Sequence record: LR745206.1
Length of the DNA stretch: 64,000 bases
Direction: 5' to 3' (one strand)
Of this stretch, positions 7,954 to 59,385 are shown one piece after another. Position 1 is the stretch's first letter, and the number at the start of each line of letters is the position of its first letter. The translations under genes and the position numbers were made by a program. The notes beneath the pieces are model-generated. The model was not told where the DNA came from, ran no database searches, and saw nothing but the letters and a program-made list of their open reading frames with translations.

Positions 7954-8810
7954 TGATAGAAACACCATTCAACTATACCGGTTCAAAATTCAAACTACTT
8001 GGTCAGATATTACCAGAGCTTGATTACACAAAACCATATTTTGTGGATTTATTTTCTGGTGGTGGATCAGTTTATACTAATGTATTGGATAAATATGAAA
8101 GAATTATTTCTAATGATATAATCGGTGATCTTATAGGTGTACATAGTTCTTTATTAGAGTCAGATGATATCATTGGTGAGACTAAAGGTATATCACCAGG
8201 TAAATCCAACCCAGATGGATTTGGAGCTCTTAGGAGTGATTATAATGAAAATCCAACACCAGCAAAATTGTGGGCTTTGATGTTATCATCTACGAATAAT
8301 ATGATGAGATTCAATCAAAAATTCAAATATAATCAAACTTATGGTAATCGTGGTTGGAACTCTAATACTGACAAAAAAGTAGAGTCATTTATTAATCATA
8401 TTAGAAAATATAAAGATAAGATAAATTTCACATCAAAAACATTTGATGAGATAGGAATACCACCAACACTTGGTAAATCAAATAAATTCATGTTTTATTG
8501 TGATCCACCTTATGGAAGAATTAAGAATGTGGATGGTACAATGGCTAAGAAGCAGATATCCGAAGCTGGTTATAATGCTTTTTGGAAGAAAGATGATGAT
8601 TTGAGACTATATGATTATTTAAAATCAATTGATGAGATGGGATCATCTTTCATGGTATCTGGTGTTTTAGAACATAATGGGGAAACTTGTTGGATGCTTG
8701 ATAAGCTTATAGATAATGGTTATAATTATACGGTTTTATCTTTTGATTATAATAAAGTATCACGTAAAGGAGACAAGGAAACAAAAGAAATAATAATCAA
8801 AAACTATTAA
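7953..8810 (+). CDS. dam: DNA adenine methyltransferase (Dam/D12 class), orphan
   Basis: FNYTGSK, FVDLFSGGGSV (motif I), DPPY (motif IV). Confidence 0.9.
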   Translation: MIETPFNYTGSKFKLLGQILPELDYTKPYFVDLFSGGGSVYTNVLDKYERIISNDIIGDLIGVHSSLLESDDIIGETKGISPGKSNPDGFGALRSDYNENPTPAKLWALMLSSTNNMMRFNQKFKYNQTYGNRGWNSNTDKKVESFINHIRKYKDKINFTSKTFDEIGIPPTLGKSNKFMFYCDPPYGRIKNVDGTMAKKQISEAGYNAFWKKDDDLRLYDYLKSIDEMGSSFMVSGVLEHNGETCWMLDKLIDNGYNYTVLSFDYNKVSRKGDKETKEIIIKNY

Positions 8811-9271
8811 CTCTTTAGTATCTGACAAGAGCAAAATTTAATATTTTCTATATCAATATAACCATTCTTCTTAGATAATGTTTTTAGATGTAGATGTGTT
8901 TTACTTAAAACATCATCCTTGTTAATTTCGGATAAATTATATATCTTATTAGTTATCACTAATGTATATTCACCATCACTTACAATAACTCTACACTTAA
9001 TATTATTAACACCACAAATGTCTATGAATCTTATTAATTCCTCATTTATATCATACAAATTAAAAAGTCCAATAGATTGTCCATCTAATGTATAACCACT
9101 ATCACCTTTCTTATATATGATAAACTCATCAGAAAAATTATAACTATCTGGTGATAAATGAAGAACTTCATAACCATCATCTTTCAATTCTAAAAATATA
9201 TCTTCGATATCTACAATTGTCTTTTTAGTTTCAAAAATAGAATGTTCTTTATACAATTTCAAATATTTCAC
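8807..9271 (-). CDS. hypothetical protein with CTS-like N-terminus (DIFxELxDDG family)
   Basis: start re-assigned to GTG 9271 giving MKYLKLYKEHSIFE; TAATATATAC at 9275-9284 just upstream. Confidence 0.7.
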   Translation of the reverse strand: MKYLKLYKEHSIFETKKTIVDIEDIFLELKDDGYEVLHLSPDSYNFSDEFIIYKKGDSGYTLDGQSIGLFNLYDINEELIRFIDICGVNNIKCRVIVSDGEYTLVITNKIYNLSEINKDDVLSKTHLHLKTLSKKNGYIDIENIKFCSCQILKS

Positions 9272-9351
9272 ACTGTATATATTATATAAAATCCTCAAAA
9301 ATCAAGGAAAACGTCATTTTGAAATATATACACTAAAAATAATTAAAAAAT

Positions 9352-9567
9352 ATGGAATACTTAGACAAATATGATTCCTTACTAAAGCTTATGACCGAGG
9401 AGGTTGAGATAGATGGTAAGAAGTTCAATTTAAAAGATGATTTCGAAAAGTTTTTCGTGCGTGGAAATAAAACTGCTGGAACACGTATTCGAAAGATGAT
9501 GCAAGAGATTAAAAAACTTTCACAGGAAATAAGAACAGATGTTCAAGGATATAAAGAAAAAATTTAA
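9352..9567 (+). CDS. histone H1-like small DNA-binding protein (Bacteroidota type)
   Basis: FEKFFVRGNKTAGTRIRKMMQEIKKLSQEIR matches the recalled family pattern KF..KGNKAAGTRxRK.LQE.K. Confidence 0.65.
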   Translation: MEYLDKYDSLLKLMTEEVEIDGKKFNLKDDFEKFFVRGNKTAGTRIRKMMQEIKKLSQEIRTDVQGYKEKI

Positions 9568-9584
9568 TATTTAAATATCTAACC

Positions 9585-9614
9585 AAAAAAACCGAGAAAT
9601 TTTCTCGGTTTTTT
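9585..9614. terminator. bidirectional intrinsic terminator
   Basis: A-tract ACCGAGAA/TTCTCGGT T-tract between convergent genes. Confidence 0.85.
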
Positions 9615-10173
9615 ATTTATAATAAACCCAATTACTTCTATAATCTTTTTTACTAGAACAATAGACAGCATATTCATTTATAATTTCCTTACCCGTATTG
9701 TATTTACCACAGACAATAGACCAATTACCATATCTTTCATAAGATCGACTGAGTATCTTCATACTCAACATAACATTCAATTCAATATTATTCCTCAAAT
9801 CATCATTTGTTATTTTATCATCAAATCCCATAATTTTATTATAGATACTTCTACCAGTGGATGGCATTATTTGCATTGGTCCTAATGCACCAGCATAAGA
9901 ACCCTGTTCTGGGACATAATCCCAATGAAAAGGTCCTTTATATCGAGTCTCTCTATAAGCTACATTATAAGCTATGTATTTTGGAACATTATAGATATCA
10001 GAATATTTTTCTATCATCTCATACATAATTATAGACTTTGGAACACTTGGTGATCCATCTAACATAGTAAGTTCTGTTGTTGACCTTTCTGTTTCTTTAT
10101 TCCTTATATCACAAGTCACCACTATCATAATTGATATGATAATTGTTACATATGTTATAATCTTACTTATCAT
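9613..10173 (-). CDS. lytic transglycosylase (SLT domain) with N-terminal anchor
   Basis: RETRY catalytic Glu, GPMQIMPSTG, YNTG; hydrophobic N-terminus from ATG 10173. Confidence 0.85.
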   Translation of the reverse strand: MISKIITYVTIIISIMIVVTCDIRNKETERSTTELTMLDGSPSVPKSIIMYEMIEKYSDIYNVPKYIAYNVAYRETRYKGPFHWDYVPEQGSYAGALGPMQIMPSTGRSIYNKIMGFDDKITNDDLRNNIELNVMLSMKILSRSYERYGNWSIVCGKYNTGKEIINEYAVYCSSKKDYRSNWVYYK

Positions 10174-14888: not shown

Positions 14889-16559
14889 ATGAGATGGATC
14901 AAAAATAGAGACAAGTTTATTAGCGAAGCTAAGATTCGTGATGTTATATTCCCAAGACAGGCAAAGGAAATTAGTAGAAATTGGGGAGAGAAATATCTTG
15001 ATTATGAAGAGGTTGTACCAACTAATAAAATCAAACAAGGTAAGTGGAAATTATCAGAAGAAGATAAACTAAATGTTCTTGGTAAATTCTTTGATTGTGA
15101 TATGGGTAGAGTTTATGAAATATTTACCAATTTACCAGACAAATTAGCTGATATTCTATTTAAGTCAATTGATACTAGTTTACTTGGTAGAAATAAGGAA
15201 AAATATGAAATAATATTAAAAGATTTTAATGTTAAATCACCAACAGTAGATCAAATTGTTGTGCTATATGATAACATCTTTAGAAAATTGTCAGTAAATG
15301 ATACTAAAGGAACGGAGATGTTACAGAGAGATGAGAATGGTAGACCTATTCGTGACGGAGAAGGTAATATGATTAAGATATCTAAAGAGGAAGGAGATCC
15401 TATTTTTTCAAGTAATTTAGTTAATATTAACTCATTTATATCAGATTATAACAATTGTTATCCAGATGCTTCTGTTACAAGAGGAGTATTTGATAGTAGA
15501 GATATATCAAATTTAAGAAACTTAGCAAAGGAAAATCATAATAGTGATTATAAAGTAGATTTTGAAATATTTAACAGAGATGTTTATTTACAGATAAATC
15601 ACAACCCAAAAGATATATTAAATATATCTATATCACAATTCTTTTCATCTTGTCAACATCTATATAGTGGTAGTTATAGAAATCAATTATTAGGAAATGT
15701 TTTTGACCCTAATAGTATTCCAGCATTTTTATTATTTGAAACTCCTATTACTTGGGGCGAAGAAAAAATATCAGAATTTTTACCACTTTCTAGAATGTTT
15801 ATTAGAAATATAGAGTCATTTGATGATTCATCAACTACTAAAATATTCTTTGATAGAGCTTACCCAGATAGAATGAAAGATGTTTTTGGTGAAATGGTGG
15901 AAAAATATAGTGATAATAAAGAAATGGATGAAAGTCCATCATATTACTATTATACACCTGATGTTGAACTTGATGATACTAAGATTAGAGATCCTTATAT
16001 GGATAGACTAAATCTTAGAAAAATGCCTTATATAGGTGTTAATACTAAGTCACTTTATCTGAGTAGAAATTATGATTGGAGTAATGTTAAAGTATCACCT
16101 AATGCTAAGATTAAAGAATTAGTTATCGAAACAACTGATATACCAGAAAACCTGCTAAAAATTAAAATAGAATTGGAATGGGTTAAATTTAGATATTTGA
16201 AAATAAATACATTAAAGAATTTTGAAAATGTTAAAGCAGACGCAATTGCTTTTGATAAATGTAAATTGGATAATAAGATTTTAGAAGATATTAATACCAT
16301 TAATAATAATATAAAGAAATTACAAATTGTTAGTTGTGATATCAGTAATTTTGATGTTTCTATGTTTGCTAATTTGGAAGAATTACAAATGATATACACA
16401 TTAGATTCAATAGAAGATTTAGAAAATGTATTGAAAAATACAAAATTAGAAAAATTAGTAATATCAGGTGATTTGATTAAAAACAAAGACTCAAAAGCTT
16501 TTGTTAACTCATTGAAATCTAAGATGAAAGTGGAAATTGTAGGCCCCGTAGTAATATGA
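14889..16559 (+). CDS. large hypothetical protein, CTS-like N-terminus, LRR-like C-terminus
   Basis: ATG 14889 gives MRWIKNRDKFISEA; LxxLxI periodicity at C-terminus; TAATATATAT at 14857. Confidence 0.7.
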   Translation: MRWIKNRDKFISEAKIRDVIFPRQAKEISRNWGEKYLDYEEVVPTNKIKQGKWKLSEEDKLNVLGKFFDCDMGRVYEIFTNLPDKLADILFKSIDTSLLGRNKEKYEIILKDFNVKSPTVDQIVVLYDNIFRKLSVNDTKGTEMLQRDENGRPIRDGEGNMIKISKEEGDPIFSSNLVNINSFISDYNNCYPDASVTRGVFDSRDISNLRNLAKENHNSDYKVDFEIFNRDVYLQINHNPKDILNISISQFFSSCQHLYSGSYRNQLLGNVFDPNSIPAFLLFETPITWGEEKISEFLPLSRMFIRNIESFDDSSTTKIFFDRAYPDRMKDVFGEMVEKYSDNKEMDESPSYYYYTPDVELDDTKIRDPYMDRLNLRKMPYIGVNTKSLYLSRNYDWSNVKVSPNAKIKELVIETTDIPENLLKIKIELEWVKFRYLKINTLKNFENVKADAIAFDKCKLDNKILEDINTINNNIKKLQIVSCDISNFDVSMFANLEELQMIYTLDSIEDLENVLKNTKLEKLVISGDLIKNKDSKAFVNSLKSKMKVEIVGPVVI

Positions 16560-18187
16560 AAGATTTAAAACACATAAAGTTATTCGAAGCATTCGAATCA
16601 TCAATTTTACCGAAAACACTTGGTTATATAAATCCATCAAGTAGAAGTACTTTTATGCAATATATCAAGAAGATATGTAATGTTATTGATTTCCCAATCT
16701 CTGAATTATCTGATGATTATCTTGAATATTTACCATTCAGTGCAGCTCTAAAAAAAGCTGATATAATAACAGATGAACCTTGTGATGCTACAAGTGGTCA
16801 AGCTTTCCCTGAATATGAAGTTAAAGGTGAGGTTTGTAATAAAGGATCATTGAAAAGAAAATGGGGAACTAGAGTTAGATCAGTAACTTGTCCTGTTTGT
16901 GGTGGTACTGGTGTTAAACCAAAAGTTGGAGAACCTAAATTAATAAAATTTTGGTTTACTAGTGAAGGTGATTATGTTGATACTACTTGTGTTGATGGTG
17001 TTATAAGACCTTCTGGTAGAGAAGGTACTACTGTTAATAGGTTATCAGAAAAAGACTCTGATTATGTTGTTGTTAAAACACTAAATCATAACGAGGTAAG
17101 AAGATTACAAACCGGTAGTTTTGTCAAGATAACACTTGGTGATAGAAATGATACAACATATGCTTATATCTTAAATAGAGGTGGAAATGTATTCGCTATA
17201 CAAAATGTAGCTGAAGGTAGTGGACCATCTCGTTATAATGGTATAGCTAGATATAGTTGGTCAATAGGTAATGGTGAGTATAGAAATGCTATATTAGTTA
17301 ATAGAGTAACTGAGGAAGATAAAACAAGTGTTCCAGATCCATATGATTGGAATACTGGATTTCAGTTTGGTCATAGAGGTATGGTAGCTAGATCAACAAA
17401 TATTGAACCAAATATAAAAAGAGCACACTTTGCTATTGTTATGGATTTTTCCAAATTGAAAAAATCTGAATATAATAAAGCGAAAGATATAAAAACTAAT
17501 AGAGTAGAAGCAAAAGAAGGAACTTTAGCATTTATGTCTGATGAATCTATCAGAAAAGCAAATGTTAATCGATATATTACTAAAATAGCTGCTGGTTTAG
17601 ATGTGAGTGATATTACTAATCTAAATAAAATAGTTAAAAGAATATTAGGGGTTAACTCAACTATCTTTAATATAAGAAGTGGTTATGCAAAGGATTATAT
17701 ATCTAACATAATTGGTTCATATATTGAGATATTTAAAGCTTCTGATGATAGAAAAAATCTTTATATTGAAGAGTTAAACTCTAATATAAAGGAGTATTTT
17801 AAAACTATGAGTGCTAGAAACTCAAATATAAACACAAATGTCTTAGAAATTAAGAAGAAATTATCAAGTAGTGGTAAAAAAGATGAATTAAAAATAATCA
17901 ATTTATTAGAAGAACTGAATAAATCATCATATGATATATTAACTGGTATTAACATTGAAACAATAGAAGATCTAGAAGTTATTTATCAAAAGTTATTAGC
18001 AATTAAAAATATAATAACAGTACGTAGATATGGTCTTGATAGACTTAGTAATGTTATGGATTATATGAATAGAAATGATGAACGTAATTCTTATCAATAT
18101 TTAACTGATCATTATTATGTTGGTGATTATAAAGAAGCAATAATATCGGGATTGGAAACAGCTAATAAAATAGTTAAAAAATTATAA
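16556..18187 (+). CDS. hypothetical protein, CTS-like N-terminus, zinc-ribbon motif
   Basis: MKDLKHIKLFEAFES; CPVCGGTG. Confidence 0.7.
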   Translation: MKDLKHIKLFEAFESSILPKTLGYINPSSRSTFMQYIKKICNVIDFPISELSDDYLEYLPFSAALKKADIITDEPCDATSGQAFPEYEVKGEVCNKGSLKRKWGTRVRSVTCPVCGGTGVKPKVGEPKLIKFWFTSEGDYVDTTCVDGVIRPSGREGTTVNRLSEKDSDYVVVKTLNHNEVRRLQTGSFVKITLGDRNDTTYAYILNRGGNVFAIQNVAEGSGPSRYNGIARYSWSIGNGEYRNAILVNRVTEEDKTSVPDPYDWNTGFQFGHRGMVARSTNIEPNIKRAHFAIVMDFSKLKKSEYNKAKDIKTNRVEAKEGTLAFMSDESIRKANVNRYITKIAAGLDVSDITNLNKIVKRILGVNSTIFNIRSGYAKDYISNIIGSYIEIFKASDDRKNLYIEELNSNIKEYFKTMSARNSNINTNVLEIKKKLSSSGKKDELKIINLLEELNKSSYDILTGINIETIEDLEVIYQKLLAIKNIITVRRYGLDRLSNVMDYMNRNDERNSYQYLTDHYYVGDYKEAIISGLETANKIVKKL

Positions 18188-18193: not shown

Positions 18194-18673
18194 ATGAATT
18201 ATAGAGATAACACACCAACTTATAATGTAAATAGACGAGTAGTTAACTTCGGTGACTATTGTAATGACTTTGAGAAGGAAAAAGAAGACTTAAAAAAAGT
18301 TAAGAGATCAATCACACCTAACAGCGATGAGAGACAAAAGTTTCCAAAAAACTCTAGATATAAATTTAACACAATTACTAGAAAGATGGATGATTTAACA
18401 CCAGATATCATTGATGATAAATTAAAATCTATGGAGGAAGTGGATGAGTCTAAAATAAATGAATCATCTATCGATTTTGATGTTTTACATAAGATTACAC
18501 AATTACCAGGATTCAGTAAATTAAAAGAAGATTTCAGAAAGTGTATTGATGAGTTTAATACTGAGTTAAATTCTGCTGCTAGTGAAATTGGTTATGATGA
18601 GGGTGATAGTGATCACAGCTTAGCTTATAATGCTGCAATACAAGAAGCAATAGATGAAATAGTTGGGTGGTAA
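18194..18673 (+). CDS. hypothetical protein
   Basis: 159-aa ORF. Confidence 0.6.
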   Translation: MNYRDNTPTYNVNRRVVNFGDYCNDFEKEKEDLKKVKRSITPNSDERQKFPKNSRYKFNTITRKMDDLTPDIIDDKLKSMEEVDESKINESSIDFDVLHKITQLPGFSKLKEDFRKCIDEFNTELNSAASEIGYDEGDSDHSLAYNAAIQEAIDEIVGW

Positions 18674-19224
18674 TGAAGCACTTAAAAGCATTTGAAGAAT
18701 ATGAATTCCCAAAGAATAAGTGGGAAATTGTTTCATCTAATCCTGTTAAAAAGATAGAAGGTAAAACACTAATAGAATTGGTTGATACTGCATATAAATC
18801 AACACCACTTGGATCTTTTGTTAAAACAATACAAGACGTAGTTAAAAGTGATTGGTTAGTCATCGATTATAATGAAGAATCTGGTGTTGATGCTTGTATA
18901 TTTTACAGAGAGCCTAGAACTAATGAAAATTGGATAGGCAAAAAGATACAAGGTATTGGACATGATGGTGTAAAAGATTCTAAGAAATTGATTATACAAA
19001 AAATGATTGATATTCTAAATAAAGATGGATTTTGGATAGAAGCATCAGATAAGATGGAAGAGGTTCTAGAGAAAAGTTGTGATAGAGTTACTGATGTTAA
19101 TATATTAAAAAAGTTATTCCCAGAATCTAAATTTAGAATCTTAGAAAATGGTCAATATGAGAGAACAATAGAAAGTGGTGAATTTGTTAAAGAATCCGTA
19201 TTTGGAAAACCAAAATTAAAATAA
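18673..19224 (+). CDS. hypothetical protein with CTS-like N-terminus
   Basis: ATG 18673 overlaps upstream stop (TAATG); MKHLKAFEE. Confidence 0.7.
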   Translation: MKHLKAFEEYEFPKNKWEIVSSNPVKKIEGKTLIELVDTAYKSTPLGSFVKTIQDVVKSDWLVIDYNEESGVDACIFYREPRTNENWIGKKIQGIGHDGVKDSKKLIIQKMIDILNKDGFWIEASDKMEEVLEKSCDRVTDVNILKKLFPESKFRILENGQYERTIESGEFVKESVFGKPKLK

Positions 19225-19765: not shown

Positions 19766-20290
19766 ATGAAGTATTTAAAGAAATACAAAGCTTTTGAGTT
19801 AAAGTCTTCGACTTACCTATCTGCTGCTGATAAATTATCTAAAAATCATCCAGAAAGATCTAAAAAATTGAGACAATGGGTTGATAACTCTGGTGATGTT
19901 GATATTAACTATCTTGATCCAAGACCATTATACTCAAAGGATAATGTTTATTACATAACAAAGGTTTATGTTCAACCAGATGATACGTTTGGTGGTCTTG
20001 GTAATAATATAGAAGTAACATTAGAGTCTGCTAGTGATATTTACACACTCTGGATATATAATTGGTTATCGGATGGTCAACATCTTACATCAGTAACTAA
20101 TACAATAGAAACTTATGGTACTCCTTGGGCATCACCAGGATATACAAGAAAAGATGATCAACCTATTATGTCTTTTCCAGATAAATTCTATCTAGATGAT
20201 AGAAAATCAGCTAGAATATTTATGGAAATAGTTGAAAAGGAAGCTGGTGAAAAGTTATTATTCTCACTTAATGATATTTATAAAAGCTAA
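19766..20290 (+). CDS. hypothetical protein with CTS-like N-terminus
   Basis: MKYLKKYKAFEL. Confidence 0.7.
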   Translation: MKYLKKYKAFELKSSTYLSAADKLSKNHPERSKKLRQWVDNSGDVDINYLDPRPLYSKDNVYYITKVYVQPDDTFGGLGNNIEVTLESASDIYTLWIYNWLSDGQHLTSVTNTIETYGTPWASPGYTRKDDQPIMSFPDKFYLDDRKSARIFMEIVEKEAGEKLLFSLNDIYKS

Positions 20291-20778
20291 TGAAATACTT
20301 AAAAACATTTGAATCAATTGATGAACTAAGAAGGGAATCTAAGATAAAATCATATATCAGTGAAATAATGCAACCATTAAAGGATGATGGTTGGGTTACT
20401 AAAATAGAAACCAATTGGAACAAAAAGAATGCCGGGCAAGTAATAAACATAGGAACCGATATTAATAGAGATAAAGATAATATTGTGAGATTTGAATATA
20501 GGTTTAAAATAGTTCTTGGTAAAAGAGAAATGAATGAAAATGATAATAACAATCTTTTGGATTGTGTTTACCAAATGTTATCATTTTTGAATTCGGATAA
20601 CGAATATGAATTCGCATTAACACTATTCGCTTATGCTGATATTTGGTCAAAAAAAGATGGAACATCAGCAACCACATTATTAGATACCCAATTATTTATA
20701 AATAATGAGTCTGATATTAATTCAATAGAATTACCAAAGGAATCAGATATATTAGTTTGTGATTTATTTGTTAAATAA
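20290..20778 (+). CDS. hypothetical protein with CTS-like N-terminus (DIFxELxDDG family)
   Basis: MKYLKTFES; EIMQPLKDDG. Confidence 0.7.
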   Translation: MKYLKTFESIDELRRESKIKSYISEIMQPLKDDGWVTKIETNWNKKNAGQVINIGTDINRDKDNIVRFEYRFKIVLGKREMNENDNNNLLDCVYQMLSFLNSDNEYEFALTLFAYADIWSKKDGTSATTLLDTQLFINNESDINSIELPKESDILVCDLFVK

Positions 20779-26987: not shown

Positions 26988-27195
26988 TATTAGGTTACGT
27001 AAAATTGGAACAGAAAAGGTAAAAGTATTTGAGAAATGCTTTGATAAAGTTTATGATTACTACAAACAAAAAGCAGAAGATTCTGGTTATTGGGGTGAAC
27101 TCAAATTCATAAAAGAAAAAGGTAAAATAATAGTTTATACTGTTATTGAATTACCTCCTTTAGATGATGATGATTTAATTATCCGTGTTTCTTAA
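26980..27195 (+). CDS. hypothetical protein
   Basis: 71-aa ORF. Confidence 0.55.
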   Translation: MDDIRLRKIGTEKVKVFEKCFDKVYDYYKQKAEDSGYWGELKFIKEKGKIIVYTVIELPPLDDDDLIIRVS

Positions 27196-27660
27196 TCTTT
27201 TCCTCATTTCCATATAGTCAATTGGTATTCTCCAATTTAACCCAACATGAGAACATTCTTTATTAGATAGATTTTCTAATTTATCTAAGGTCGTAAACAA
27301 TGTATTATCTTTATGCTTACCACCACCAATACTTATTTTTGTTGTGAATATTGGTTGTATTAAATATGAATATCTTTTTAGGTAATCATCAGCTCTAAAT
27401 ATAACATCACTTATATCACCTAATTTAAATGTTGGTAAATAAAAACTTTCAACATCTCGATCACCAACAATACCATTTATCTCAATATTAATACTATCAC
27501 CAATTACTTTACCCATCCTTTTTGATTCAACAACAACTTCTATATCCTCATCACGAATCTCATTGAATATATCATTTAGATCATTGATGATTATTATTTC
27601 TTCCTCTTTTGTTATGGGAGAAGAACTTTCGAATAATTTATACTTTTTCAGGTATTTCAT
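27175..27660 (-). CDS. CTS-like N-terminus, DIFxELxDDG family
   Basis: MKYLKKYKLFES; LNDIFNEIRDED. Confidence 0.75.
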   Translation of the reverse strand: MKYLKKYKLFESSSPITKEEEIIIINDLNDIFNEIRDEDIEVVVESKRMGKVIGDSINIEINGIVGDRDVESFYLPTFKLGDISDVIFRADDYLKRYSYLIQPIFTTKISIGGGKHKDNTLFTTLDKLENLSNKECSHVGLNWRIPIDYMEMRKRLRNTDN

Positions 27661-28609
27661 TTATAAATACTATTTCTATTTCTCTTATAACTGGTCTAAC
27701 ATCAGTTTCTATATCTTTCTCATCTATTGATATTTCTAAATCATCAAATTGCATTTCTGATTTGAATTTATATTCACCATCTTGCTTCCCAACATATGAA
27801 AATTCTTCTAACCACTCATTCATACCATATTCCAATATTTGGAATTCTACTTCATGTAAAGTTGTATCTTCTAATCCTTGTTTTATACTAAAATCATCTA
27901 GTGTTTTGAATTTTCTATTAAATGTATGGTGTGTACCATTAACCAAAGATAATCGAAGTGTAACACTTTCCAATTTATAATTGATTATATCAGTTATTTG
28001 TTTTATTCTATAATCAATATCCTCAATCATAATACTATTTTGTCCTTTTCTATAAAGTGATATTTGTATAGTATCTGTTTTTAATCCTGCTGAGGGCATA
28101 CTTCGTTTAACGCTAGATACTACATGATATCCATATCCCAAATCCTCCATATCATACATCATCGATTCAACATGGTCTCTATCATCACTAAGAGATTCAT
28201 TAACACCATACCTAGATTTATAGTAGTTTGGACCTCTATAATCTGTTATTTTAATGTTTATATTCCAAACATCTTCACCCATAAACATTTGCATATCATT
28301 GCCGGATAATTGATATTCTCTTGTACCACTCATAATAACATTGAACGTACAGAAAGACCAACCAAGTCTAGCAGAGTATTCGGCAATTCTTGCTGTAGCG
28401 TCTGATATTTCTTGTGTTATTTTAAATTTATTGGTGAATCTTCCTTGTTCATCCATTGTAACATCAGCAAATATTCTTTCATTCTTTTCATCAGGTAAAA
28501 ACCGAACAAATAATCCCAAATCTTCTATCTCAAGTATAATATCTTTTAGACCTTGTGATAACTCTTCGAAATTATTTTCAAATAACTTATATGTTTTTAA
28601 ATATATCAT
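27638..28609 (-). CDS. CTS-like N-terminus, two DIFxELxDDG-family domains
   Basis: MIYLKTYKLFEN; LKDIILEIEDLG and VESMMYDMEDLG. Confidence 0.75.
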   Translation of the reverse strand: MIYLKTYKLFENNFEELSQGLKDIILEIEDLGLFVRFLPDEKNERIFADVTMDEQGRFTNKFKITQEISDATARIAEYSARLGWSFCTFNVIMSGTREYQLSGNDMQMFMGEDVWNINIKITDYRGPNYYKSRYGVNESLSDDRDHVESMMYDMEDLGYGYHVVSSVKRSMPSAGLKTDTIQISLYRKGQNSIMIEDIDYRIKQITDIINYKLESVTLRLSLVNGTHHTFNRKFKTLDDFSIKQGLEDTTLHEVEFQILEYGMNEWLEEFSYVGKQDGEYKFKSEMQFDDLEISIDEKDIETDVRPVIREIEIVFINEIPEKV

Positions 28610-34680: not shown

Positions 34681-37600
34681 AGATCCTACGACCAAGTGGT
34701 TTAGAAATTGGCTTAGGTTCTTCAACTGGTTTCTGTGGATCATACTCATCCTTCAATGATTTTATTAGTTCTTTTAAGAAATCTTTGAAAGTGGTTTCCA
34801 TCTCTCTTTCTTTACCCTTCTCAGCTTTTGATCTATCAAAACTAATACGGCTCAAAAAATCAAATGAATCTTTTAACTCTGGTTTATTCATTCTAAGGGA
34901 TCTAGGAGCTTCCGCTTTTCTGTAACTAAATACCTTTTCAACTAAAGTTTTGAACTCATCAAGTTTATTAGTAGATCCTAAATAGGATAAAATATATTTA
35001 AATGCTAATAATCTAATAGTTTTAGGTTTCTTAACATCTTCCTTCGTTTTAGAATCTCTACCCCAATATGAAGTATTATCCTTTATAGTACCAATTGAGT
35101 TAACATATTTTTCAAATTTTACTTTATCATATAGATAATAACAAACTTGTAAATTATACTGAACCCATTGCTCACTTTCATCAACATGCTTTAGTGTCCA
35201 TTCATATAAAGATTTTAAGTTATCATCAGTAAGTTCTAACTCTTTAAAATCTCTACTTGATCTAGATATTACTTTAGCTATTGTGTGTAATAAACTACTA
35301 TCAAATGTTGCTCCTCTACCTTTAAAATCCCACTCAGATATTTTATCAGCATCCGATTCTGTTTCACCTTTCCCTACTTTTAACTTATCTAAATTAGTTA
35401 AAATCATCAACACCATTAAATCATATTCACCTTTATCATATCTAAATACGGATAAACCATCAACATAATCTTTGAAATAAGTATCATACCATTTCTTTGG
35501 TGTAATACGACTTGAATATCCATAACCAGATTTACTAGAAGCATTTTTTAAGTCACTTAATAACTTATATTGATATTCCTTCTTCTTAGCAAAAGATATG
35601 GCTTCCTCTAGTTTATCTTCAAAACCACTACCTTTAAACAGTGTTCTATAAGATGTTGTTGAATACTCACGCATTTCATTTTTACTTCTAACTATTGCTA
35701 TTAAATGAGTATAGGCATTTTCTAAATCTAACTTTCTTTCAACCAAGGTCTTGTAGTATTCTTCTGAATAGGTTATTGTCTCTTCACCTTCTCTATTAGT
35801 GTGTCTGGATTTGGCACCCTTTAATGATTCCCTAATTATATCAATTTCCTCATCCTTACCTATCGTGTATCCTAATCCAGTTAAATATTCAATTATTTTA
35901 TTTATATCACTTGGATACCTAGTATCATGAAACATTTTTTTAACAACCTTAGACATTGTTCCTATTTCATCATAATCTTTTTTAGTAAATCCTAATTCAT
36001 TGGCATATTTAATAGTTGTACTAACATCAAAGTCACTATATGATCTCTTATCTTTCTCACTAGCCGTTCTTAACTCACCTAAACCCTTTATAGATATAGC
36101 TTTCTTAACCTTTTCTTTTATTATATTCCAAATATCTGGAACCCTACTCATACCATTCTTAGTAGAAATAAATGACCAAAAGTCAACATATAAATTAATT
36201 GATGTTTTGTCCTTTATAGTATATTGTTCCCATCTCTCATCCGCCATATAAGTTGGTTTTACCCTCTCCTCAATGATATTATTTACCTTATCACTAATAT
36301 AATCTGTCAATAATTTATGAGCATTCTTATCAACCAATTTCAACAATTCATTAAAACTTGATAACTTAGCATATGATTTAATATCATCCATACTACCATT
36401 ACCATATATACCAAATATATTAATAAATACATTTAAACTCTCTTTATCAATTATTTTATAACCAATTTTATATAATGAATCAATTACTGACTTATTTAAT
36501 GGTAACTTTTCTCTAAATATATCACTTAATGTTACTATATTACTCCTAGTTTTTGCTAACTTTTTACTTGCTATTTTTCTACCTCCACTATCTTGTGGTA
36601 ATGGTTCTTTTGGTAACAATTGAACTAATTCCGGACCAATATCAAAAAATAACATTGAGTTAAGTCTAAATAAAGATTTACCACTATCAGAATTACGATC
36701 TATTCCTAATTTTTCCCAATCATCACTCCAAAATGTAGCAGTCAATCTATTACGAATGGAAATTTTATCTGGATAGTCCTTAAATAAATCTATCATCAAT
36801 TTTGTTTCTCTATCTAATGCTGATGAATAACTCTTAACTATTTCCTCTTTGGTAAATCCAACAGAAAATAAATTATCTATTTTTAGATTTGATGATTGTT
36901 TTATTATACCAGTTTTAATCAATTCATCCTTTGTGAAATATGATAATGAAGCAGGATCTATATTTGTATATTTGTATAATTTATTATCAATTACTTCCTC
37001 TTTAGTTAATTTTAATATAACAAATAGGTTAGATAAATTTGTTCTATTATCCAATCTTTGAATACATTTTTTAGATAAAATAGTTTCGTTATCCAATTCC
37101 TTTAGTTGATCCCAACTCAATTCAGTTTTTGATAAAATATCCAATTTATCTTTCTCTTCTTTGGTAAAATATTCTGTATCATTTTTCTTTGGTCGCATTC
37201 TATAACCATATCTATCCTTGTTTTTAAAAACCAACTTCTTGTTTATAATATCATCTTTGGATATACCATAATCTAAGAGTATGCTAACTGGTATATCATT
37301 CCAGTCTGTCATTGCTTTCAAAGTATCAATTGACACATATAAATCTCTAAGTAAAACTCCCCTTTCCTTTAGAATATTTTCAATTTTATCCTTACTTACT
37401 GACCCATCATATTTATCATGTGCTGTTGTGTAATCAAAATGTGTTGTTAAACCTATCTTGGACATTTTATCATTCTTACCAAAATTATCAACTAAGAATA
37501 TAACCCATTGTAGCCCACCATTAGCATATGAATCAAACGTAGAAGATGAACGAACAATACACCAAGATGTATCACCACCCAATTTCTTTATCTGATTATA

Positions 37601-38206
37601 GTTTACTTGACATATTATAATATCATGTTCATCATCAGCAACTTTTATATAAGCTCCTGTATCTTCCACTTGTTTTAATAACTTACCAAAGTTACTATCT
37701 AATTGTGATTGTAATAATCGTTTAGCCGCTTCGACCAAAGTTTTTTTATCCCTGAAAGAAGATATCTTTCTTATCAACGAAGGTAAGGATTTATTCTTAC
37801 CCAATTGGTTTAATAATATTAAATCATTCTCATCTGTTAATGAGAAAAATGCTTTCTGGTGTGATGGGAATTGATTGATTACTTTCTTAGCACTTGATTT
37901 AATTTTAGCTTGTTCAACTTGGTCCCAAAATTGTTCAACTGATTCTAAATCAACAATAGATTTAGTGAAATAAGTTATTAAACCACTCTTATCTTTAGCA
38001 ATCTCCCAGATGTTTTTTAACTCATCCATTGGTTGCTTATCAACATATCTTAACTTGGTGAACCACTGAGTATATCCATCGTTACCTTTAAGCATATCTC
38101 GAATAGCTAGATAATCAGTATCGGTTTGTTCTATTCCTAATTTTTTAAGTATAGCTTTAGCACCAATAACGTTTTCGTTTAAATGGAATCTTGAGATATA
38201 TTTCAT
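34352..38206 (-). CDS. very large protein with CTS-like N-terminus; natural 3' end probably lost
   Basis: MKYISRFHLNEN; TAATATATAC at 38211-38220; last ~110 codons (below ~34680) are antisense of the helicase fragment. Confidence 0.7.
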   Translation of the reverse strand: MKYISRFHLNENVIGAKAILKKLGIEQTDTDYLAIRDMLKGNDGYTQWFTKLRYVDKQPMDELKNIWEIAKDKSGLITYFTKSIVDLESVEQFWDQVEQAKIKSSAKKVINQFPSHQKAFFSLTDENDLILLNQLGKNKSLPSLIRKISSFRDKKTLVEAAKRLLQSQLDSNFGKLLKQVEDTGAYIKVADDEHDIIICQVNYNQIKKLGGDTSWCIVRSSSTFDSYANGGLQWVIFLVDNFGKNDKMSKIGLTTHFDYTTAHDKYDGSVSKDKIENILKERGVLLRDLYVSIDTLKAMTDWNDIPVSILLDYGISKDDIINKKLVFKNKDRYGYRMRPKKNDTEYFTKEEKDKLDILSKTELSWDQLKELDNETILSKKCIQRLDNRTNLSNLFVILKLTKEEVIDNKLYKYTNIDPASLSYFTKDELIKTGIIKQSSNLKIDNLFSVGFTKEEIVKSYSSALDRETKLMIDLFKDYPDKISIRNRLTATFWSDDWEKLGIDRNSDSGKSLFRLNSMLFFDIGPELVQLLPKEPLPQDSGGRKIASKKLAKTRSNIVTLSDIFREKLPLNKSVIDSLYKIGYKIIDKESLNVFINIFGIYGNGSMDDIKSYAKLSSFNELLKLVDKNAHKLLTDYISDKVNNIIEERVKPTYMADERWEQYTIKDKTSINLYVDFWSFISTKNGMSRVPDIWNIIKEKVKKAISIKGLGELRTASEKDKRSYSDFDVSTTIKYANELGFTKKDYDEIGTMSKVVKKMFHDTRYPSDINKIIEYLTGLGYTIGKDEEIDIIRESLKGAKSRHTNREGEETITYSEEYYKTLVERKLDLENAYTHLIAIVRSKNEMREYSTTSYRTLFKGSGFEDKLEEAISFAKKKEYQYKLLSDLKNASSKSGYGYSSRITPKKWYDTYFKDYVDGLSVFRYDKGEYDLMVLMILTNLDKLKVGKGETESDADKISEWDFKGRGATFDSSLLHTIAKVISRSSRDFKELELTDDNLKSLYEWTLKHVDESEQWVQYNLQVCYYLYDKVKFEKYVNSIGTIKDNTSYWGRDSKTKEDVKKPKTIRLLAFKYILSYLGSTNKLDEFKTLVEKVFSYRKAEAPRSLRMNKPELKDSFDFLSRISFDRSKAEKGKEREMETTFKDFLKELIKSLKDEYDPQKPVEEPKPISKPLGRRILINFSFLSRSFKYFSANLKVLNSFKTKRDLKNEVSTLIPFECTVEHSILGDNFNCNSSTIDLLKATKIQLLLGGINLDISIVVNVLPDPAVAFTTIFLLVTITALKIFS

Positions 38207-38244: not shown

Positions 38245-38655
38245 TTAGGAATTTTTATTAAAATTTATAGACATAATAACGAAGTTTCCTGTCTCATGAT
38301 TATTAACCAATCCAATAAAGTTTTCATACTTTATTTTATATTCTCTAGTAGCTCCCATCATTTGAGGCCATTTTACATTCTCCATTGTGAATTCAACCTC
38401 AACATTATAATCATATGACAACATCATATAATCATAACAACGTTCAATATATTCCAAAGTGTCCATGACATCAAACCTACCAAATTTCTCACTAGTTCCC
38501 TTTATCTTTACTGATAAACCACCATAACTCGGAGCAAATAATATACCGTCATCTATCCAAATATTGAATCCATCATCTTTTAATTCCTGAAAGATGTCTA
38601 ATATTTCATCTTTATTATAATCTTTGGATTCATTAAATTTCCTTAAATATTTCAT
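38245..38655 (-). CDS. CTS-like N-terminus, DIFxELxDDG family
   Basis: MKYLRKFNES; ILDIFQELKDDG. Confidence 0.75.
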   Translation of the reverse strand: MKYLRKFNESKDYNKDEILDIFQELKDDGFNIWIDDGILFAPSYGGLSVKIKGTSEKFGRFDVMDTLEYIERCYDYMMLSYDYNVEVEFTMENVKWPQMMGATREYKIKYENFIGLVNNHETGNFVIMSINFNKNS

Positions 38656-49639: not shown

Positions 49640-49921
49640 ATGAAGTATATTAAACCATACAAATTATTTGAAAGTATAGATAATCTATTGATAGCATTAT
49701 GTGATTGTTATGAAGTTGGTGAAAGTGGTTGTAATGAATTGGAAAGATTATTGAAAACAACATCAGGTAAAATAAGTGATAATGATGAATTAGTTGATAA
49801 AATATTTGATATTGTAATAACTAAAAATAAAACAGGTGGTCATAAAGGACCTCTTATGTCTGATCCACATAATAGAGTGGAAGAGATTAGAGATTTTATT
49901 AAAAAAAATGAGACATCTTAA
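49640..49921 (+). CDS. CTS-like N-terminus hypothetical protein
   Basis: MKYIKPYKLFES; TAATATATAT at 49626-49635. Confidence 0.75.
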   Translation: MKYIKPYKLFESIDNLLIALCDCYEVGESGCNELERLLKTTSGKISDNDELVDKIFDIVITKNKTGGHKGPLMSDPHNRVEEIRDFIKKNETS

Positions 49922-51544: not shown

Positions 51545-52156
51545 ATGAAATACATAAATTCATATAAGATATTTGAAGCAGGATCAAAAGAACCAAAGGT
51601 TACTATATTAACAACAATAGATGTTGATGATTTAATTGGTGGTGTTGGTACTGATGTTGATAATCTATATTCAGGTATAATAACAAGTATTAAAGACTTT
51701 TTCAAAAAGTATAAAGATACTGATGTTGATACTGATGAGGATAAAAAGATATGGCAGTATCTTGTTCAAAAACCTGGTTTAACTAAGGCTAAAAAAGCTA
51801 CAAGTGATTGGGTATTATCTACATTAGATAAAGATATCTCAAGAATGAAATCTGATATTATTGATATAGATACCTTTTTATCATTAGATAGTGAGTTAGA
51901 CTCTATTAAAGAAGGTGATGAGGTATTAATGTTAACAACACATTCAGATGATAGAATTAAGAATTTCCCTGTTATAATAACATTTATTGTTGAGAAAATA
52001 GAATTAACTGGTATGGGTTGGTTAGGATTAGGTGCTAGTAACTCATTTTGTCCACAAATTGGTAAGAGTTGGGGTATGATTGATATAACATGGAGTCAAA
52101 AGATTGTTACTAAAGATACTTATAATAGTTTTGCTGACCCAGATAAACATCTTTAA
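51545..52156 (+). CDS. CTS-like N-terminus hypothetical protein
   Basis: MKYINSYKIFEA; AAATATATAC at 51532-51541. Confidence 0.75.
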   Translation: MKYINSYKIFEAGSKEPKVTILTTIDVDDLIGGVGTDVDNLYSGIITSIKDFFKKYKDTDVDTDEDKKIWQYLVQKPGLTKAKKATSDWVLSTLDKDISRMKSDIIDIDTFLSLDSELDSIKEGDEVLMLTTHSDDRIKNFPVIITFIVEKIELTGMGWLGLGASNSFCPQIGKSWGMIDITWSQKIVTKDTYNSFADPDKHL

Positions 52157-52160: not shown

Positions 52161-52736
52161 TTAAAATATTAAAAGTATTAACTTTCTAACATCACCCATT
52201 GATTTTATTCTTTCAATTAAATCATCATCAGTTTCGGTTAATGTATAATTACTATCACTGCTTTTATTACCAAGTAAAGAAACCTTTGTGTGGTTAACAG
52301 TAGTTCTGGATGAATATATTCTTGGTAAAGGTATGATATGTTCAACTTCAATACCTCTTATGGATAAACCTTTTTCTTTCAAATAATCACTGACAAATCT
52401 AAGATGCTCATAAACATCAATAATACTAAATGTTTGGAATGATGTTGATGGTTTCTTTTTAAGTAATCTAACATCTGTTTTTATACTAACTATAAACTTC
52501 TTACCACCCAAATCAACATCATCAGTTGAAAATAGTTGAAATATATCAAGCCTGTTTGGATGATTATTTAATACATCTCTACTACAATAATTACTCAAAT
52601 GACCCAACATTGTTCTGGTGACAACACTATTAACACGTACATCATATTTAACCTCATCGGATATATCAGCAAAAAGATATTTAATATCAAGCGTATTCAT
52701 AGATTCAAATAACTTATATGGTCTTAGGTATATCAT
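52161..52736 (-). CDS. CTS-like N-terminus, DIFxELxDDG family
   Basis: MIYLRPYKLFES; TAATATATAT at 52740-52749. Confidence 0.75.
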   Translation of the reverse strand: MIYLRPYKLFESMNTLDIKYLFADISDEVKYDVRVNSVVTRTMLGHLSNYCSRDVLNNHPNRLDIFQLFSTDDVDLGGKKFIVSIKTDVRLLKKKPSTSFQTFSIIDVYEHLRFVSDYLKEKGLSIRGIEVEHIIPLPRIYSSRTTVNHTKVSLLGNKSSDSNYTLTETDDDLIERIKSMGDVRKLILLIF

Positions 52737-57311: not shown

Positions 57312-57329
57312 TTATTATTGGTTTAATCA

Positions 57330-57383: not shown

Positions 57384-57699
57384 AGAATTTAGATTCGAAT
57401 AATTCATATGCTCGTAGGAAATCATCTTGTTTAATGAATACATTTATCATATAGCTTTCGAATTCAATATCATATCTATTATTCATATCACCACCTACCT
57501 CAACAATAATATTTTCATAATCAAAGATAGCTTTATTATTATCTAGGTCAATGGTAAAGTTATTCAAAAGGAATCCTATGTGTTTTGATTTTTCTAAATC
57601 ATCTATGTGTATAACATCATCATATTCACCACACATGATATCATCTATGTTTCTTCTTAATGTTATATAAGTATTGAATGCAGATCTCTTTATATTCAT
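57382..57699 (-). CDS. hypothetical protein
   Basis: 105-aa ORF; TATCTTTA at 57715-57722. Confidence 0.6.
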   Translation of the reverse strand: MNIKRSAFNTYITLRRNIDDIMCGEYDDVIHIDDLEKSKHIGFLLNNFTIDLDNNKAIFDYENIIVEVGGDMNNRYDIEFESYMINVFIKQDDFLRAYELFESKF

Positions 57700-57760
57700 A
57701 AAAGTATAATTGGTTAAAGATAAGGAATAATTCTATACATTAAAAATAAATATATACATT

Positions 57761-58324
57761 ATGAATTACTTAAAACTATATGAAGGCTTCTGGGGTGATA
57801 GAAAGAAAAGGAGAAAGGCTAATAAAGCTTTAACCGAAGCTGAGAATCAAATAAATAATCATATATCAAAGTTTATTAATAAGAAGTATGGTTTCCAATA
57901 TAGTGTAGTTGTATGGAAAAGTAAGAATTCCAATTATACAGAAATAGATCATGATCAATTAACATTTAATGGTGTTGAAATAGAACCTACTTATTATAGT
58001 AATTCGGATATTGCTACCGGAGCTTTCTTCTATCTAAAATTTACTGATAAGAATAACGATGAGGTTTCTATATACTTTCCATCAGATGCAATTACACAGA
58101 ATGAAATAGATTTAGAGTATGCTAAACCTTGGGATTTATCTAAGAAGGCATTAAGAGGGGATGTTGCTGATAAAGAAGAAGATTTGGATAAAATTGATTA
58201 TGATGATCCAAATAGATATCCAAATAGAGATTCACATTTTGTATATGTTCCTAGTGAATATAAAACGATTGAATTACTTACTGAGTTAAAAGAGTTATTA
58301 CAAAGTCTAAACGAACAAATATGA
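57761..58324 (+). CDS. CTS-like N-terminus hypothetical protein
   Basis: MNYLKLYEGF; AAATATATAC at 57748-57757. Confidence 0.7.
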   Translation: MNYLKLYEGFWGDRKKRRKANKALTEAENQINNHISKFINKKYGFQYSVVVWKSKNSNYTEIDHDQLTFNGVEIEPTYYSNSDIATGAFFYLKFTDKNNDEVSIYFPSDAITQNEIDLEYAKPWDLSKKALRGDVADKEEDLDKIDYDDPNRYPNRDSHFVYVPSEYKTIELLTELKELLQSLNEQI

Positions 58325-58683
58325 GATATATTAAAACATATGAGTCATTTGTTTGTTTGGATGATTCACTTAAACTAGAAGTAGAGGATATTCTAAGAGA
58401 GTTAGAAGATGATAACATACGTGTTGACGTACATTCATGGGATGGTGTTGAAGTTTTTTTAACTAATAAATCGGAGCATAAGGTAAAAAGCTTCACAGCT
58501 CCCGATACATTTCCATATGAAGTTATAAAACCTCACATAGAACATTTAATATCCTTCTTAGGTGATAAAGGATATACTCTGAAAACTATTCATAATATAG
58601 TTGATTTAAGACCAAGGATATTTAGGCGTAATGATTTAGATGGTAGACAAATAGGTAGATTAGAATTAAGATTTACTAATTAA
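58321..58683 (+). CDS. CTS-like N-terminus, DIFxELxDDG family
   Basis: MRYIKTYESF; VEDILRELEDDN. Confidence 0.75.
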   Translation: MRYIKTYESFVCLDDSLKLEVEDILRELEDDNIRVDVHSWDGVEVFLTNKSEHKVKSFTAPDTFPYEVIKPHIEHLISFLGDKGYTLKTIHNIVDLRPRIFRRNDLDGRQIGRLELRFTN

Positions 58684-58746
58684 CTTATCAACTAAGTAAG
58701 TATATAACATATAACATTAAGTGCCAAGAATAAAATATTAATGTTC

Positions 58747-59385
58747 TCATTCAGCGTCTTTCATTAGTCTATTGAATTTTTCATCACTCATAAATCTTCT
58801 ATTAGATATTAACCAAGACCTCTCAAATTTATATCTATTATAATAATACTGAATATCAATCCTATCATCTACAATAACCGAATATACAGTTGAATCTTTC
58901 ATACCCAATACATTAATTACTTTATCATGTGCTTCTAGTACAGCCTCTCTCAATTTAGGATTCTTTATAGCTAAAAATTTTTCAGCTTCTTTATTTGTAT
59001 ATCTACCACCTTTTATAGAATAATCTATTATAACAACTGAACACCCAGGGTTTTTTTTATCTTTACTACTATTAAATATAAAGTATGAATAATCCCCTGT
59101 CTCTAATAAACTTAGTCTCTCAGCATCATTATCAGTCATGTTTGATGGGCAATCAGAAACCACAATTGAATCATGTGGTACAGATAAACTTTTACTTCTA
59201 TCAATCATAACATATGGAGTATTAACATTACTTTCGTTATTTAATACTCCTTCATAACCTAGTAAATCTTTTATATCTCTTCTAACCATATTAAAATCAT
59301 CAAATATATCTTGGTAACAATCAATGATAAGTAATATATCATCCTCCTTTGATTCAAACACTTTATATTTCTTTATATGTTTCAT
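58747..59385 (-). CDS. CTS-like N-terminus hypothetical protein
   Basis: MKHIKKYKVFES; TTATATATAC at 59390-59399. Confidence 0.75.
   Translation of the reverse strand: MKHIKKYKVFESKEDDILLIIDCYQDIFDDFNMVRRDIKDLLGYEGVLNNESNVNTPYVMIDRSKSLSVPHDSIVVSDCPSNMTDNDAERLSLLETGDYSYFIFNSSKDKKNPGCSVVIIDYSIKGGRYTNKEAEKFLAIKNPKLREAVLEAHDKVINVLGMKDSTVYSVIVDDRIDIQYYYNRYKFERSWLISNRRFMSDEKFNRLMKDAE

Follow-up and report, generated by a model that had tools for sequence, protein, structure and literature searches.

Why do so many otherwise unrelated proteins of one huge phage begin with the same short peptide, and could that peptide be an address for the capsid? The question was raised by a window of 64,000 nucleotides, bases 558001-622000 of LR745206.1, which is the 634,780-bp genome of an uncultured Mahaphage. 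The first-pass annotation listed at least 17 open reading frames of the window that share an N-terminal peptide resembling the capsid-targeting sequence of phage T4, ahead of bodies of 93-1284 aa, several of them unrelated, and inferred that the phage uses a portable packaging tag to load a very large set of proteins, such as anti-defence or host-takeover factors, into the head for co-ejection. We sought to investigate whether the observation holds over the whole genome and which of the possible functions of the peptide is best supported.

A shared N-terminal peptide of 9-12 residues

All 17 starts translate as had been described, and the observation is confirmed and is in fact larger than first stated, the undercount arising only because a single window had been seen. 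Fifteen of the starts scored 13.6-33.8 bits with a two-length position matrix, whereas two are divergent variants whose orthologues nevertheless keep the same ending, [FI]-x-E-A for the start at 14889 and [LIF]-x-E-N for the start at 38206 (Table 1). The body lengths given are correct and the bodies are largely unrelated by BLAST.

Table 1. Tagged open reading frames of the 64,000-nucleotide window (positions within the window; a slash marks the position after the Glu).
Position	Strand	Length (aa)	Tag	Score (bits)	Remarks
8807..9271	-	154	(M)KYLKLYKEHSIFE	13.6	GTG start; followed by the second element DIFLELKDDGY; paralog-family link
14889..16559	+	556	MRWIKNRDKFISE/A	-3.4	Divergent variant; internal ATG of the ORF 14865-16559; upstream partner of a conserved gene pair; an orthologue starts MKWIKDREKFLNE/A
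16556..18187	+	543	MKDLKHIKLFEAFES	25.1	Conserved family with more than 384 metagenomic homologues that all keep the N-terminus
18673..19224	+	183	MKHLKAFEE	25.6	
19766..20290	+	174	MKYLKKYKAFEL	29.4	Promoter-like TTAATATATA just upstream
20290..20778	+	162	MKYLKTFES	22.2	Second element present
27175..27660	-	161	MKYLKKYKLFES	33.8	
27638..28609	-	323	MIYLKTYKLFEN	28.3	
34352..38206	-	1284	MKYISRFHLNE/N	3.0	Variant; family conserved on contigs of up to 658 kb; 14 homologues all end [LIF]-x-E-N-[VI]
38245..38655	-	136	MKYLRKFNES	25.4	Second element DIFQELKDDGF; no homologue outside this genome
38652..39203	-	183	MKYLKSFNES	24.6	Promoter-like motif upstream
49640..49921	+	93	MKYIKPYKLFES	33.2	Promoter-like motif 5 nt upstream
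51545..52156	+	203	MKYINSYKIFEA	30.2	
52161..52736	-	191	MIYLRPYKLFES	28.6	Promoter-like motif upstream
57761..58324	+	187	MNYLKLYEG	14.1	
58321..58683	+	120	MRYIKTYES	17.4	Second element DILRELEDD
58747..59385	-	212	MKHIKKYKVFES	31.3	

In order to place the window in its genomic context, and as the first-pass annotation had itself suggested a scan of the full genome and of relatives, we scored all N-termini of the genome with the matrix. Of 916 N-termini, 98 scored at least 12 bits, and overall 98-106 N-termini, about 12% of genes or roughly one in eight, carry the tag. The signal is far above chance, since the tag was found at 0 of 2,991 internal Met and at 2 of 154,784 internal positions, and random N-termini drawn from the genome's own N-terminal composition give an expectation of 0.03 hits. 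The start lies a median of a few codons after the upstream stop. Among AT-rich comparators, no hit at 9 bits or more was obtained in PTm1, Lak-A1, LR756500 and T4, while LR756504 has none at 12 bits and 2 at 9 bits. The tag system is not confined to this genome, as it runs through a large uncultured clade, with contigs of 6-476 kb, and 202 tags were found in 670 kb of IMG/VR loci.

The first-pass annotation had named a translation-initiation bias at the DNA level, without amino-acid conservation, as an outcome that would overturn its reading, and this was examined and rejected. Synonymous codons at conserved residues follow genome usage, with Lys AAA:AAG at 34:12, Leu encoded by four codons and Ser by both codon families, so selection acts on the peptide. 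The proteins behind the tag are mostly unrelated, acidic (median pI 4.8, only 4% basic) and without known families (about 95%). The 74 strict-tag proteins fall into 66 BLAST clusters, and separate Pfam domains occur in 4 proteins, including one with a methyltransferase domain and one with a Peptidase_M15_4 domain, which shows that the tag is portable. In the 543-aa family, the first 15 residues are the most conserved of 37 blocks (0.83 against 0.60), yet AlphaFold2 leaves residues 1-15 unstructured, with pLDDT below 50. Direct reading of the 17 N-termini of the window and of the 115 N-termini of the genome scoring at least 9 bits showed charged and polar residues throughout and no hydrophobic run, unlike the true signal peptide of the window protein at 20811-24428, and the tag does not fit a Sec, Tat or lipoprotein signal peptide.

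A T4-type head module and the ending of the tag

The background to the capsid-targeting reading is established, as T4 internal proteins carry N-terminal targeting propeptides of 10-19 residues that gp21 removes after Glu (PMC9026906 section 2.6; PMC5694885). A gp21-like protease had been named in advance as something to look for, and one was found. The gene at record 198546-200669 lies directly upstream of the capsid gene and its product hits phrog_207 at 4e-30; hhalign against T4 gp21 gives a probability of 95.9% and an E-value of 6e-9, and the only PDB hit is 5JBL, the T4 prohead core protease, at 4e-7. The 108 aligned columns include conserved His-Pro and Ser-Ser-Arg segments that are invariant in 5 relatives, although Pfam Peptidase_S77 alone is below its cut-off (E 0.005). 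The neighbouring capsid protein hits Pfam Gp23 at 1.8e-26 and the portal corresponds to phrog_213; the head module is of the T4 type.

The last residues of the tag form a gp21-type site. Of the 98 tags, 78 end in [F/L/I/Y]-x-E followed mostly by Ser, Asn or Ala, with the Glu at position 9 or 11 (8-12 being the positions counted), and the residue after the Glu is Ser, Asn, Ala or Gly in 57; this is sequence grammar only. A site matrix built from the tags scores Glu44 of the capsid protein (FHSINE/NAY) at the 99.3rd percentile of 10,892 Glu positions, whereas the other five N-terminal Glu are all at or below the 62nd percentile, and this propeptide junction is conserved in five Mahaphages and aligns with PTm1 and T4. 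In addition, an 84-aa tagged protein at record 93266 has the tag directly joined to a copy of the mature capsid N-arm, exactly where the capsid propeptide ends. The protein in which the protease is fused to a scaffold-like region has the highest density of [LI]-x-E-[NSAGH] in the genome (2.69 against a median of 0.30 per 100 aa), but the tag-derived matrix does not enrich its scaffold repeats, with 5 of 75 Glu reaching the 95th percentile where about 4 are expected. Tagged bodies are not depleted of internal sites either (4.4% against 5.0%, p = 0.34).

Tagged genes also share a promoter-like motif with head genes. The motif [AT]ATATATA precedes 49% of tagged genes against 23% of others (odds ratio 3.3, p = 1e-7) and it also precedes the portal, terminase, protease, head-decoration and adaptor genes, whereas the host-type motif is depleted in front of tagged genes (5% against 14%). 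The assignment of this motif as late rests on a handful of annotated genes, and it is also found upstream of UvsX-like and PhoH-like genes.

Proposed capsid targeting and the alternatives

In light of these data, we propose that the peptide is a capsid-targeting propeptide of the T4 kind used on a very large scale, a reading to which we assign a probability of about 0.5. In this view the proteins would be made late, and the short unstructured tag (Met, basic, aromatic, Leu/Ile, basic, then an aromatic at position 7) would dock them onto the scaffolding core of the prohead, supplied by the C-terminal part of the protease-scaffold fusion protein. The gp21-family protease would then cut after the conserved Glu ([F/L/I]-x-Glu, followed by Ser, Asn or Ala), releasing inside the head about 100 different, mostly small, acidic and fast-evolving proteins that would leave the particle with the DNA at infection. 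Our analysis demonstrates the tag, its strict N-terminal position, selection on the peptide, the diversity of the cargo, the gp21 homologue, the T4-type head module and the agreement between the ending of the tag and the capsid propeptide junction, whereas docking, cleavage, presence in virions and ejection are inferred; packaging and cleavage were not assayed in this uncultured phage, no particle proteome was found, and no proteomic or structural evidence shows that any tagged protein is in a particle or is cleaved. The interpretation put forward initially is partly supported. Its claimed resemblance to the T4 sequence is one of pattern only, as ipI, ipII, ipIII, alt, gp24, gp67 and gp68 of T4 (NC_000866.4) score -13 to -29 bits, within a T4 background of mean -22.6 and sd 6.9, the likeness being closest for the 12 genes of the form MIKK-aromatic-x-Q-F-I-x-E, and the suggestion of anti-defence or host-takeover factors is conjecture given how little of the cargo has a known family. 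Moreover, a cargo of this number far exceeds any described phage, its acidity contrasts with the T4 internal proteins, which are described as basic (PMC9026906), and PTm1, Lak-A1 and LR756500, relatives with the same protease family, lack the tag in the regions sampled.

An alternative that we consider less likely, but possible, is that the tag is a linear recognition motif for something other than the prohead, either a site for timed proteolysis or activation in the cytoplasm by the same Glu-specific protease or another one, or a docking peptide for a common phage or host hub such as a chaperone, a compartment or the membrane surface, and that the proteins are not packaged. The evidence for a functional, disordered and strictly N-terminal peptide fits this equally well, the small, acidic cargo without known families is like typical intracellular takeover proteins, and the sheer number of cargo species is easier to accommodate outside a capsid. 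However, it does not explain why the ending of the tag matches the maturation junction of the capsid protein, why a tagged protein carries a capsid N-arm copy in register, or why tagged genes share the promoter motif of head genes and avoid the host-type one.

Simple inheritance within one hugely expanded paralogous family, with bodies diverged beyond recognition and the N-terminus as a conserved structural piece, appears unlikely. In its favour, 26-29 of the 98 tagged proteins share a second element, an acidic helix of the form D-I-F-x-E-L-x-D-x-G-[FY] located 10-20 residues after the tag, an HMM of which finds 26 tagged and only 2 untagged proteins; weak BLAST links exist among the small members, and tagged genes often sit in tandem clusters. 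Homology over the body is nevertheless detectable for about 28% of members only, about 70% lack the second element, body lengths run from 63 to 1284 aa, and the methyltransferase domain, the M15 peptidase domain and the capsid N-arm copy have separate origins. In the 543-aa family the tag is not part of the modelled fold, and descent does not explain why only the first 9-12 residues stay conserved while the rest diverges completely. A requirement of translation starts in this AT-rich genome, in which many mRNAs appear nearly leaderless, acting through RNA sequence or the first nascent residues, is very unlikely and already contradicted. Although 29 of the 48 tagged genes with the promoter-like motif carry it only 3-8 nt from the ATG and all tag residues use AT-rich codons, synonymous positions are free, replacements are conservative at the amino-acid level, highly expressed structural genes lack the tag, four equally AT-rich relatives show no hit at 12 bits or more in 42-50 kb each, and the expectation from N-terminal composition is negligible.

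Comparison with known systems and implications

[quoted passage not shown] Both are short peptides at the extreme N-terminus of otherwise unrelated, fast-evolving proteins, with hydrophobic or aromatic residues at positions 4 and 7 and an ending of [L/I]-x-Glu followed by a small residue, and both phages have a gp21-family protease, a Gp23-family capsid protein and a T4-type portal. Here, however, there is no position-by-position similarity, about 100 or more cargo genes are involved against a handful in T4, Phe is common at P3, three length classes exist and the protease is fused to the scaffold-like region. The giant phages phiKZ, 201phi2-1 and SPN3US also have a gp21-related protease that cuts after Glu, about 50 head proteins, and many processed head-internal proteins inferred to be targeted by their propeptides (PMC5694885, PMC7411985), but those propeptides are mostly more than 100 residues long, are not one shared motif and are cut at [A/S/G]-x-Glu, only about 8 proteins are processed in SPN3US, and the present phage belongs to a different clade (Mahaphage, Bacteroidota hosts). 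In the hypervariable internal-protein loci of T-even phages, a conserved 5' end allows gene swapping (Repoila et al. 1994); a related idea is found in PMC2839356. A conserved promoter-plus-tag 5' end in front of variable bodies would similarly favour cassette exchange, although here the cassettes are spread over the whole genome and on both strands, and exchange by recombination was not examined.

A more far-reaching and tentative possibility, which we consider less probable than not, is that the phage loads on the order of one hundred different proteins into its head through one short universal address peptide, with the roughly ten tandem 14-residue repeats of the protease-fused scaffold serving as the docking rack. 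Infection would then begin with the delivery of a whole pre-made, rapidly evolving proteome rather than a few internal proteins. If the tag is a packaging address, it would define the largest known set of virion-delivered proteins and would help to explain what part of the coding capacity of the largest phages is for, and a simple sequence rule would list candidate ejected proteins in hundreds of uncultured genomes. Literature searches, including one for the tag strings, found no mention of the peptide. Even if packaging is wrong, the finding stands on its own, since a disordered peptide under strong purifying selection on about 12% of a genome's proteins is a clear, previously undescribed sorting or recognition signal.

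The N-terminal tag and its distribution

LR745206.1, of which bases 558001-622000 form the window, is an unannotated 634,780-bp record of an uncultured phage and one of the four largest genomes of Al-Shayeb et al. 2020; those genomes belong to the Mahaphage clade and are predicted to infect Bacteroidota (PMC7162821). The GC content is about 29%, and the window has no N and no tRNA genes. The whole record was read in 13 overlapping pieces (L001-L013) and scanned piece by piece. All 17 starts listed in the first-pass annotation translate as written, and its observation of a shared N-terminal peptide is confirmed and extended here. Fifteen of them score 13.6-33.8 bits with a position matrix of two length classes, class A being M-K-[YH]-L-[KR]-x-[FY]-[NE]-E-[SN] and class B M-K-[YH]-[LI]-K-x-Y-K-[ILV]-F-E-[SA], whereas the starts at 14889 and 38206 are divergent, although their orthologues keep the [LIF]-x-E-[AN] ending.

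A scan of the full genome and of relatives had been proposed as a check on the motif. Genome-wide, 106 start codons reach 12 bits or more, and in a non-overlapping set of 916 ORFs 98 N-termini do so, compared with 0 of 2,991 internal Met, 2 of 154,784 internal positions and 0.03 expected from N-terminal composition. A third class, M-I-K-K-[YFW]-x-Q-F-I-x-E, adds 12 genes. Regions of 42-50 kb from T4 and from equally AT-rich relatives were also scanned: PTm1, Lak-A1, LR756500 and T4 give no hits, LR756504 gives none at 12 bits and 2 at 9 bits, LR756502, the closest relative, gives 4, and LR756501 gives 1. In a conservation comparison with LR756502 the counts were 1 of 4 tagged genes against 25 of 48 others, too few genes to be informative, and Tenacibaculum phage PTm1, which is cultured and shares the capsid lineage and the protease-scaffold fusion, shows no tag in 50 kb, so that no proteome-backed test was made. 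A DNA pattern for class B finds 96 stretches in IMG/VR, and the 80 loci scanned (670 kb, from contigs of 6-476 kb) hold 202 tags.

The first-pass annotation had stated that its reading would fall if the motif were explained purely by a DNA-level bias in translation initiation, and we therefore examined codon use at the conserved residues. The synonymous codons follow genome usage: Lys AAA:AAG is 34:12 against 74:26% genome-wide, Leu uses TTA, TTG, CTA and CTT, and Ser uses both TCN and AGY, while replacements are conservative (K/R, Y/H, L/I, F/Y). Selection therefore acts on the peptide and a DNA-level initiation bias is rejected. A composition artefact was also rejected on the basis of the comparator scans and the genome-wide controls, and a signal peptide by direct reading of the N-termini.

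Tagged proteins and the head module

The 74 strict-tag proteins form 66 BLAST clusters. Of the 98 tagged proteins, 26-29 share a second element after the tag, an acidic helix of the form D-I-F-x-E-L-x-D-x-G-[FYW], and form one family of small acidic paralogs, whereas the rest do not; an HMM of this element finds almost only tagged proteins. Family searches of the tagged proteins gave almost nothing: of 106 only 4 hit Pfam (DUF6576 twice, Peptidase_M15_4 once and a SAM methyltransferase once), and few hit PHROGs. The bodies are acidic, with a median pI of 4.8 against 5.5, and only 4% are basic against 25%. The 136-aa window protein has no homologue outside this genome, and AlphaFold2 of this family member with 8 paralogs gave a pLDDT of 48.8, which is unusable. 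The 543-aa and 1284-aa proteins, in contrast, belong to conserved families that keep the tag. In the 543-aa family the first 15 residues are the best-conserved block (0.83 against 0.60), yet AlphaFold2 leaves them unstructured (pLDDT below 50) while the fold starts near residue 19, which is the signature of a linear motif. A PDB fold search with the 543-aa model found no match.

Inspection of the head genes revealed the gp21-like protease that the first-pass annotation had suggested looking for. Residues 2-265 of a 707-aa protein match 'head maturation protease' phrog_207 at 4e-30, and this protein lies beside a Gp23-family capsid protein (Pfam 1.8e-26). A profile of the protease domain from five relatives aligns with T4 gp21 at 95.9% probability (E 6e-9), and its only PDB hit is 5JBL, the T4 prohead core protease, although phmmer of the whole protease-scaffold protein against the PDB gave nothing. 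The C-terminal region of about 440 residues is acidic, holds about ten tandem 14-residue repeats, YSEY[LI]AEN[LV]DKNI, and is probably the scaffold. The protein also has the highest density of [LI]-x-E-[NSAGH] in the genome, and PTm1 has the same fusion, annotated as 'prohead core scaffolding protein and protease'.

Coordinates of the head genes, related proteins and other features (record, LR745206.1 numbering; window, positions within the window; L005, one of the overlapping pieces of the record; L015, a locus with an orthologue of the first protein of the pair)
Feature	Coordinates	Strand	Size	Remarks
Large terminase	record 178254-180386
Portal	record 193127-194860			phrog_213
Protease-scaffold protein	record 198546-200669 (L005:2546-4669)		707 aa	gp21-family head protease fused to acidic repeat region
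Major capsid protein	record 200752-202434		560 aa	Gp23 family
ORF with copies of the scaffold repeat	record 460686		83 aa
Tagged protein copying the capsid N-arm	record 93266-93520		84 aa	tag in place of the propeptide
Protein copying the capsid N-terminal arm or propeptide region	record 291407		157 aa
Protein copying the capsid N-terminal arm or propeptide region	record 555284		166 aa
Large protein without Pfam hit	window 418-4893	+	1491 aa	promoter-like motif 21 nt upstream
HU-like DNA-binding protein	window 13047-13319	+
Conserved adjacent pair	window 14865-16559 and 16556-18187; L015:8332-11647		about 550 aa each	same order in a 210-kb JGI contig and in hundreds of metagenomic contigs; second protein's fold without PDB match
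Signal-peptide protein	window 20811-24428	-	1205 aa	Reelin subrepeat-B domain, PKD domains, C-terminal CHU_C type IX secretion sorting domain
D12-class N6-adenine methyltransferase	window 32523-33248	+
C5 cytosine methyltransferase	window 33383-34291	+
Phenylalanyl-tRNA synthetase alpha-like protein	window 55818-56897	-
SPFH/Band 7 protein	window 59452-60912	-
Window members of the second-element family	window 8807-9271, 20290-20778, 27175-27660, 27638-28609, 38245-38655, 58321-58683			family of about 26-29, record-wide

Based on the head module, we sought to relate the tag to head maturation. T4 gp21 and its giant-phage relatives cut after Glu (PMC5694885), and in the T4 targeting peptide residues 4 and 7 matter for targeting and residues 8 and 10 for processing (PMC9026906). 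Here positions 4 and 7 are the conserved hydrophobic residues, and 78 of 98 tags end [FLIY]-x-E followed by a small residue. A P4-P2' matrix built from the tags scores Glu44 of the capsid protein (FHSINE|NAY) at the 99.3rd percentile of 10,892 Glu positions, whereas the other five N-terminal Glu are at or below the 62nd percentile. Glu44 is the last Glu before the conserved mature region, and its context is conserved in five Mahaphages and aligns with I-N-E-N in PTm1 and I-F-E-N in T4. However, the same matrix does not enrich the scaffold repeats, and the tagged bodies are not depleted of internal cleavage-like sites. Three small proteins copy the N-terminal arm or propeptide region of the major capsid protein (GMGAV..AQP..LAGTT), and in the 84-aa tagged protein the Glu of the tag is followed directly by NADGSSTSGMGAVSSAQP..., a copy of the capsid protein's residues from 45 onward, so that the tag sits exactly where the capsid propeptide sits.

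Promoter-like motifs and other window proteins

A promoter-like motif, [AT]ATATATA (mostly TTAATATATA), occurs 304 times in the record, and 183 of these sites lie within 60 nt upstream of a gene start; in the window it is found, for example, upstream of 19766, 39203, 49640, 52736 and 418. It has two spacings to the ATG, one of 3-8 nt, which would give nearly leaderless mRNAs, and the other of 15-35 nt. The motif precedes 49% of tagged genes against 23% of others (odds ratio 3.3, p = 1e-7), and it also precedes the portal, terminase, protease-scaffold, head-decoration and head-tail adaptor genes, as well as UvsX-like and PhoH-like genes. A second, host-type motif, TATATTTG(TA), marks a different gene class made up of metabolism and nucleic-acid enzymes. 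It was found de novo among enriched 8-mers and precedes the NAD-dependent ligase, nucleotidyltransferase, NUDIX, phosphoesterase, HNH and ATPase genes. For counting, the 8-mers TATATTTG and ATATTTGT were widened to TAnnTTTG after the Bacteroidota -7 promoter consensus, and the widened pattern is depleted at tagged genes, 5% against 14%. We infer that the tagged genes are in the late class.

The 1491-aa protein starts with a Gly/Ser/Pro-rich segment like several other large genes that have the late-type promoter, so it may be structural. The domains of the 1205-aa signal-peptide protein fit a Bacteroidota host and a protein displayed on or secreted from the infected cell.

Interpretation of the tag

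The binding of the first-pass annotation's reading to the data is only partial: its proposal of a portable packaging tag resembling the T4 capsid-targeting sequence is partly supported. The tag, its selection as a peptide and its correspondence to the capsid junction come directly from the sequence analysis, whereas the late class of the tagged genes is an inference and packaging itself was not tested. Several findings do not fit. The targeting peptides of T4, read from NC_000866.4, score no better than the T4 background with the tag matrix, the cargo is acidic and extremely numerous, and relatives with the same protease family lack this tag in the regions sampled. No particle data exist, and literature searches found no description of the tag.

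Taken together, capsid targeting is the best single explanation, with a probability of about 0.5. A recognition motif that does not lead to packaging comes next but appears doubtful, and pure paralogy is unlikely, as the second element is shared by only 26-29 of the 98 tagged proteins. A translation effect is very improbable in view of the codon data. Although membership by sequence similarity fails and packaging is untested, the tag works like a T4 capsid-targeting sequence by every sequence-level criterion that we could test.
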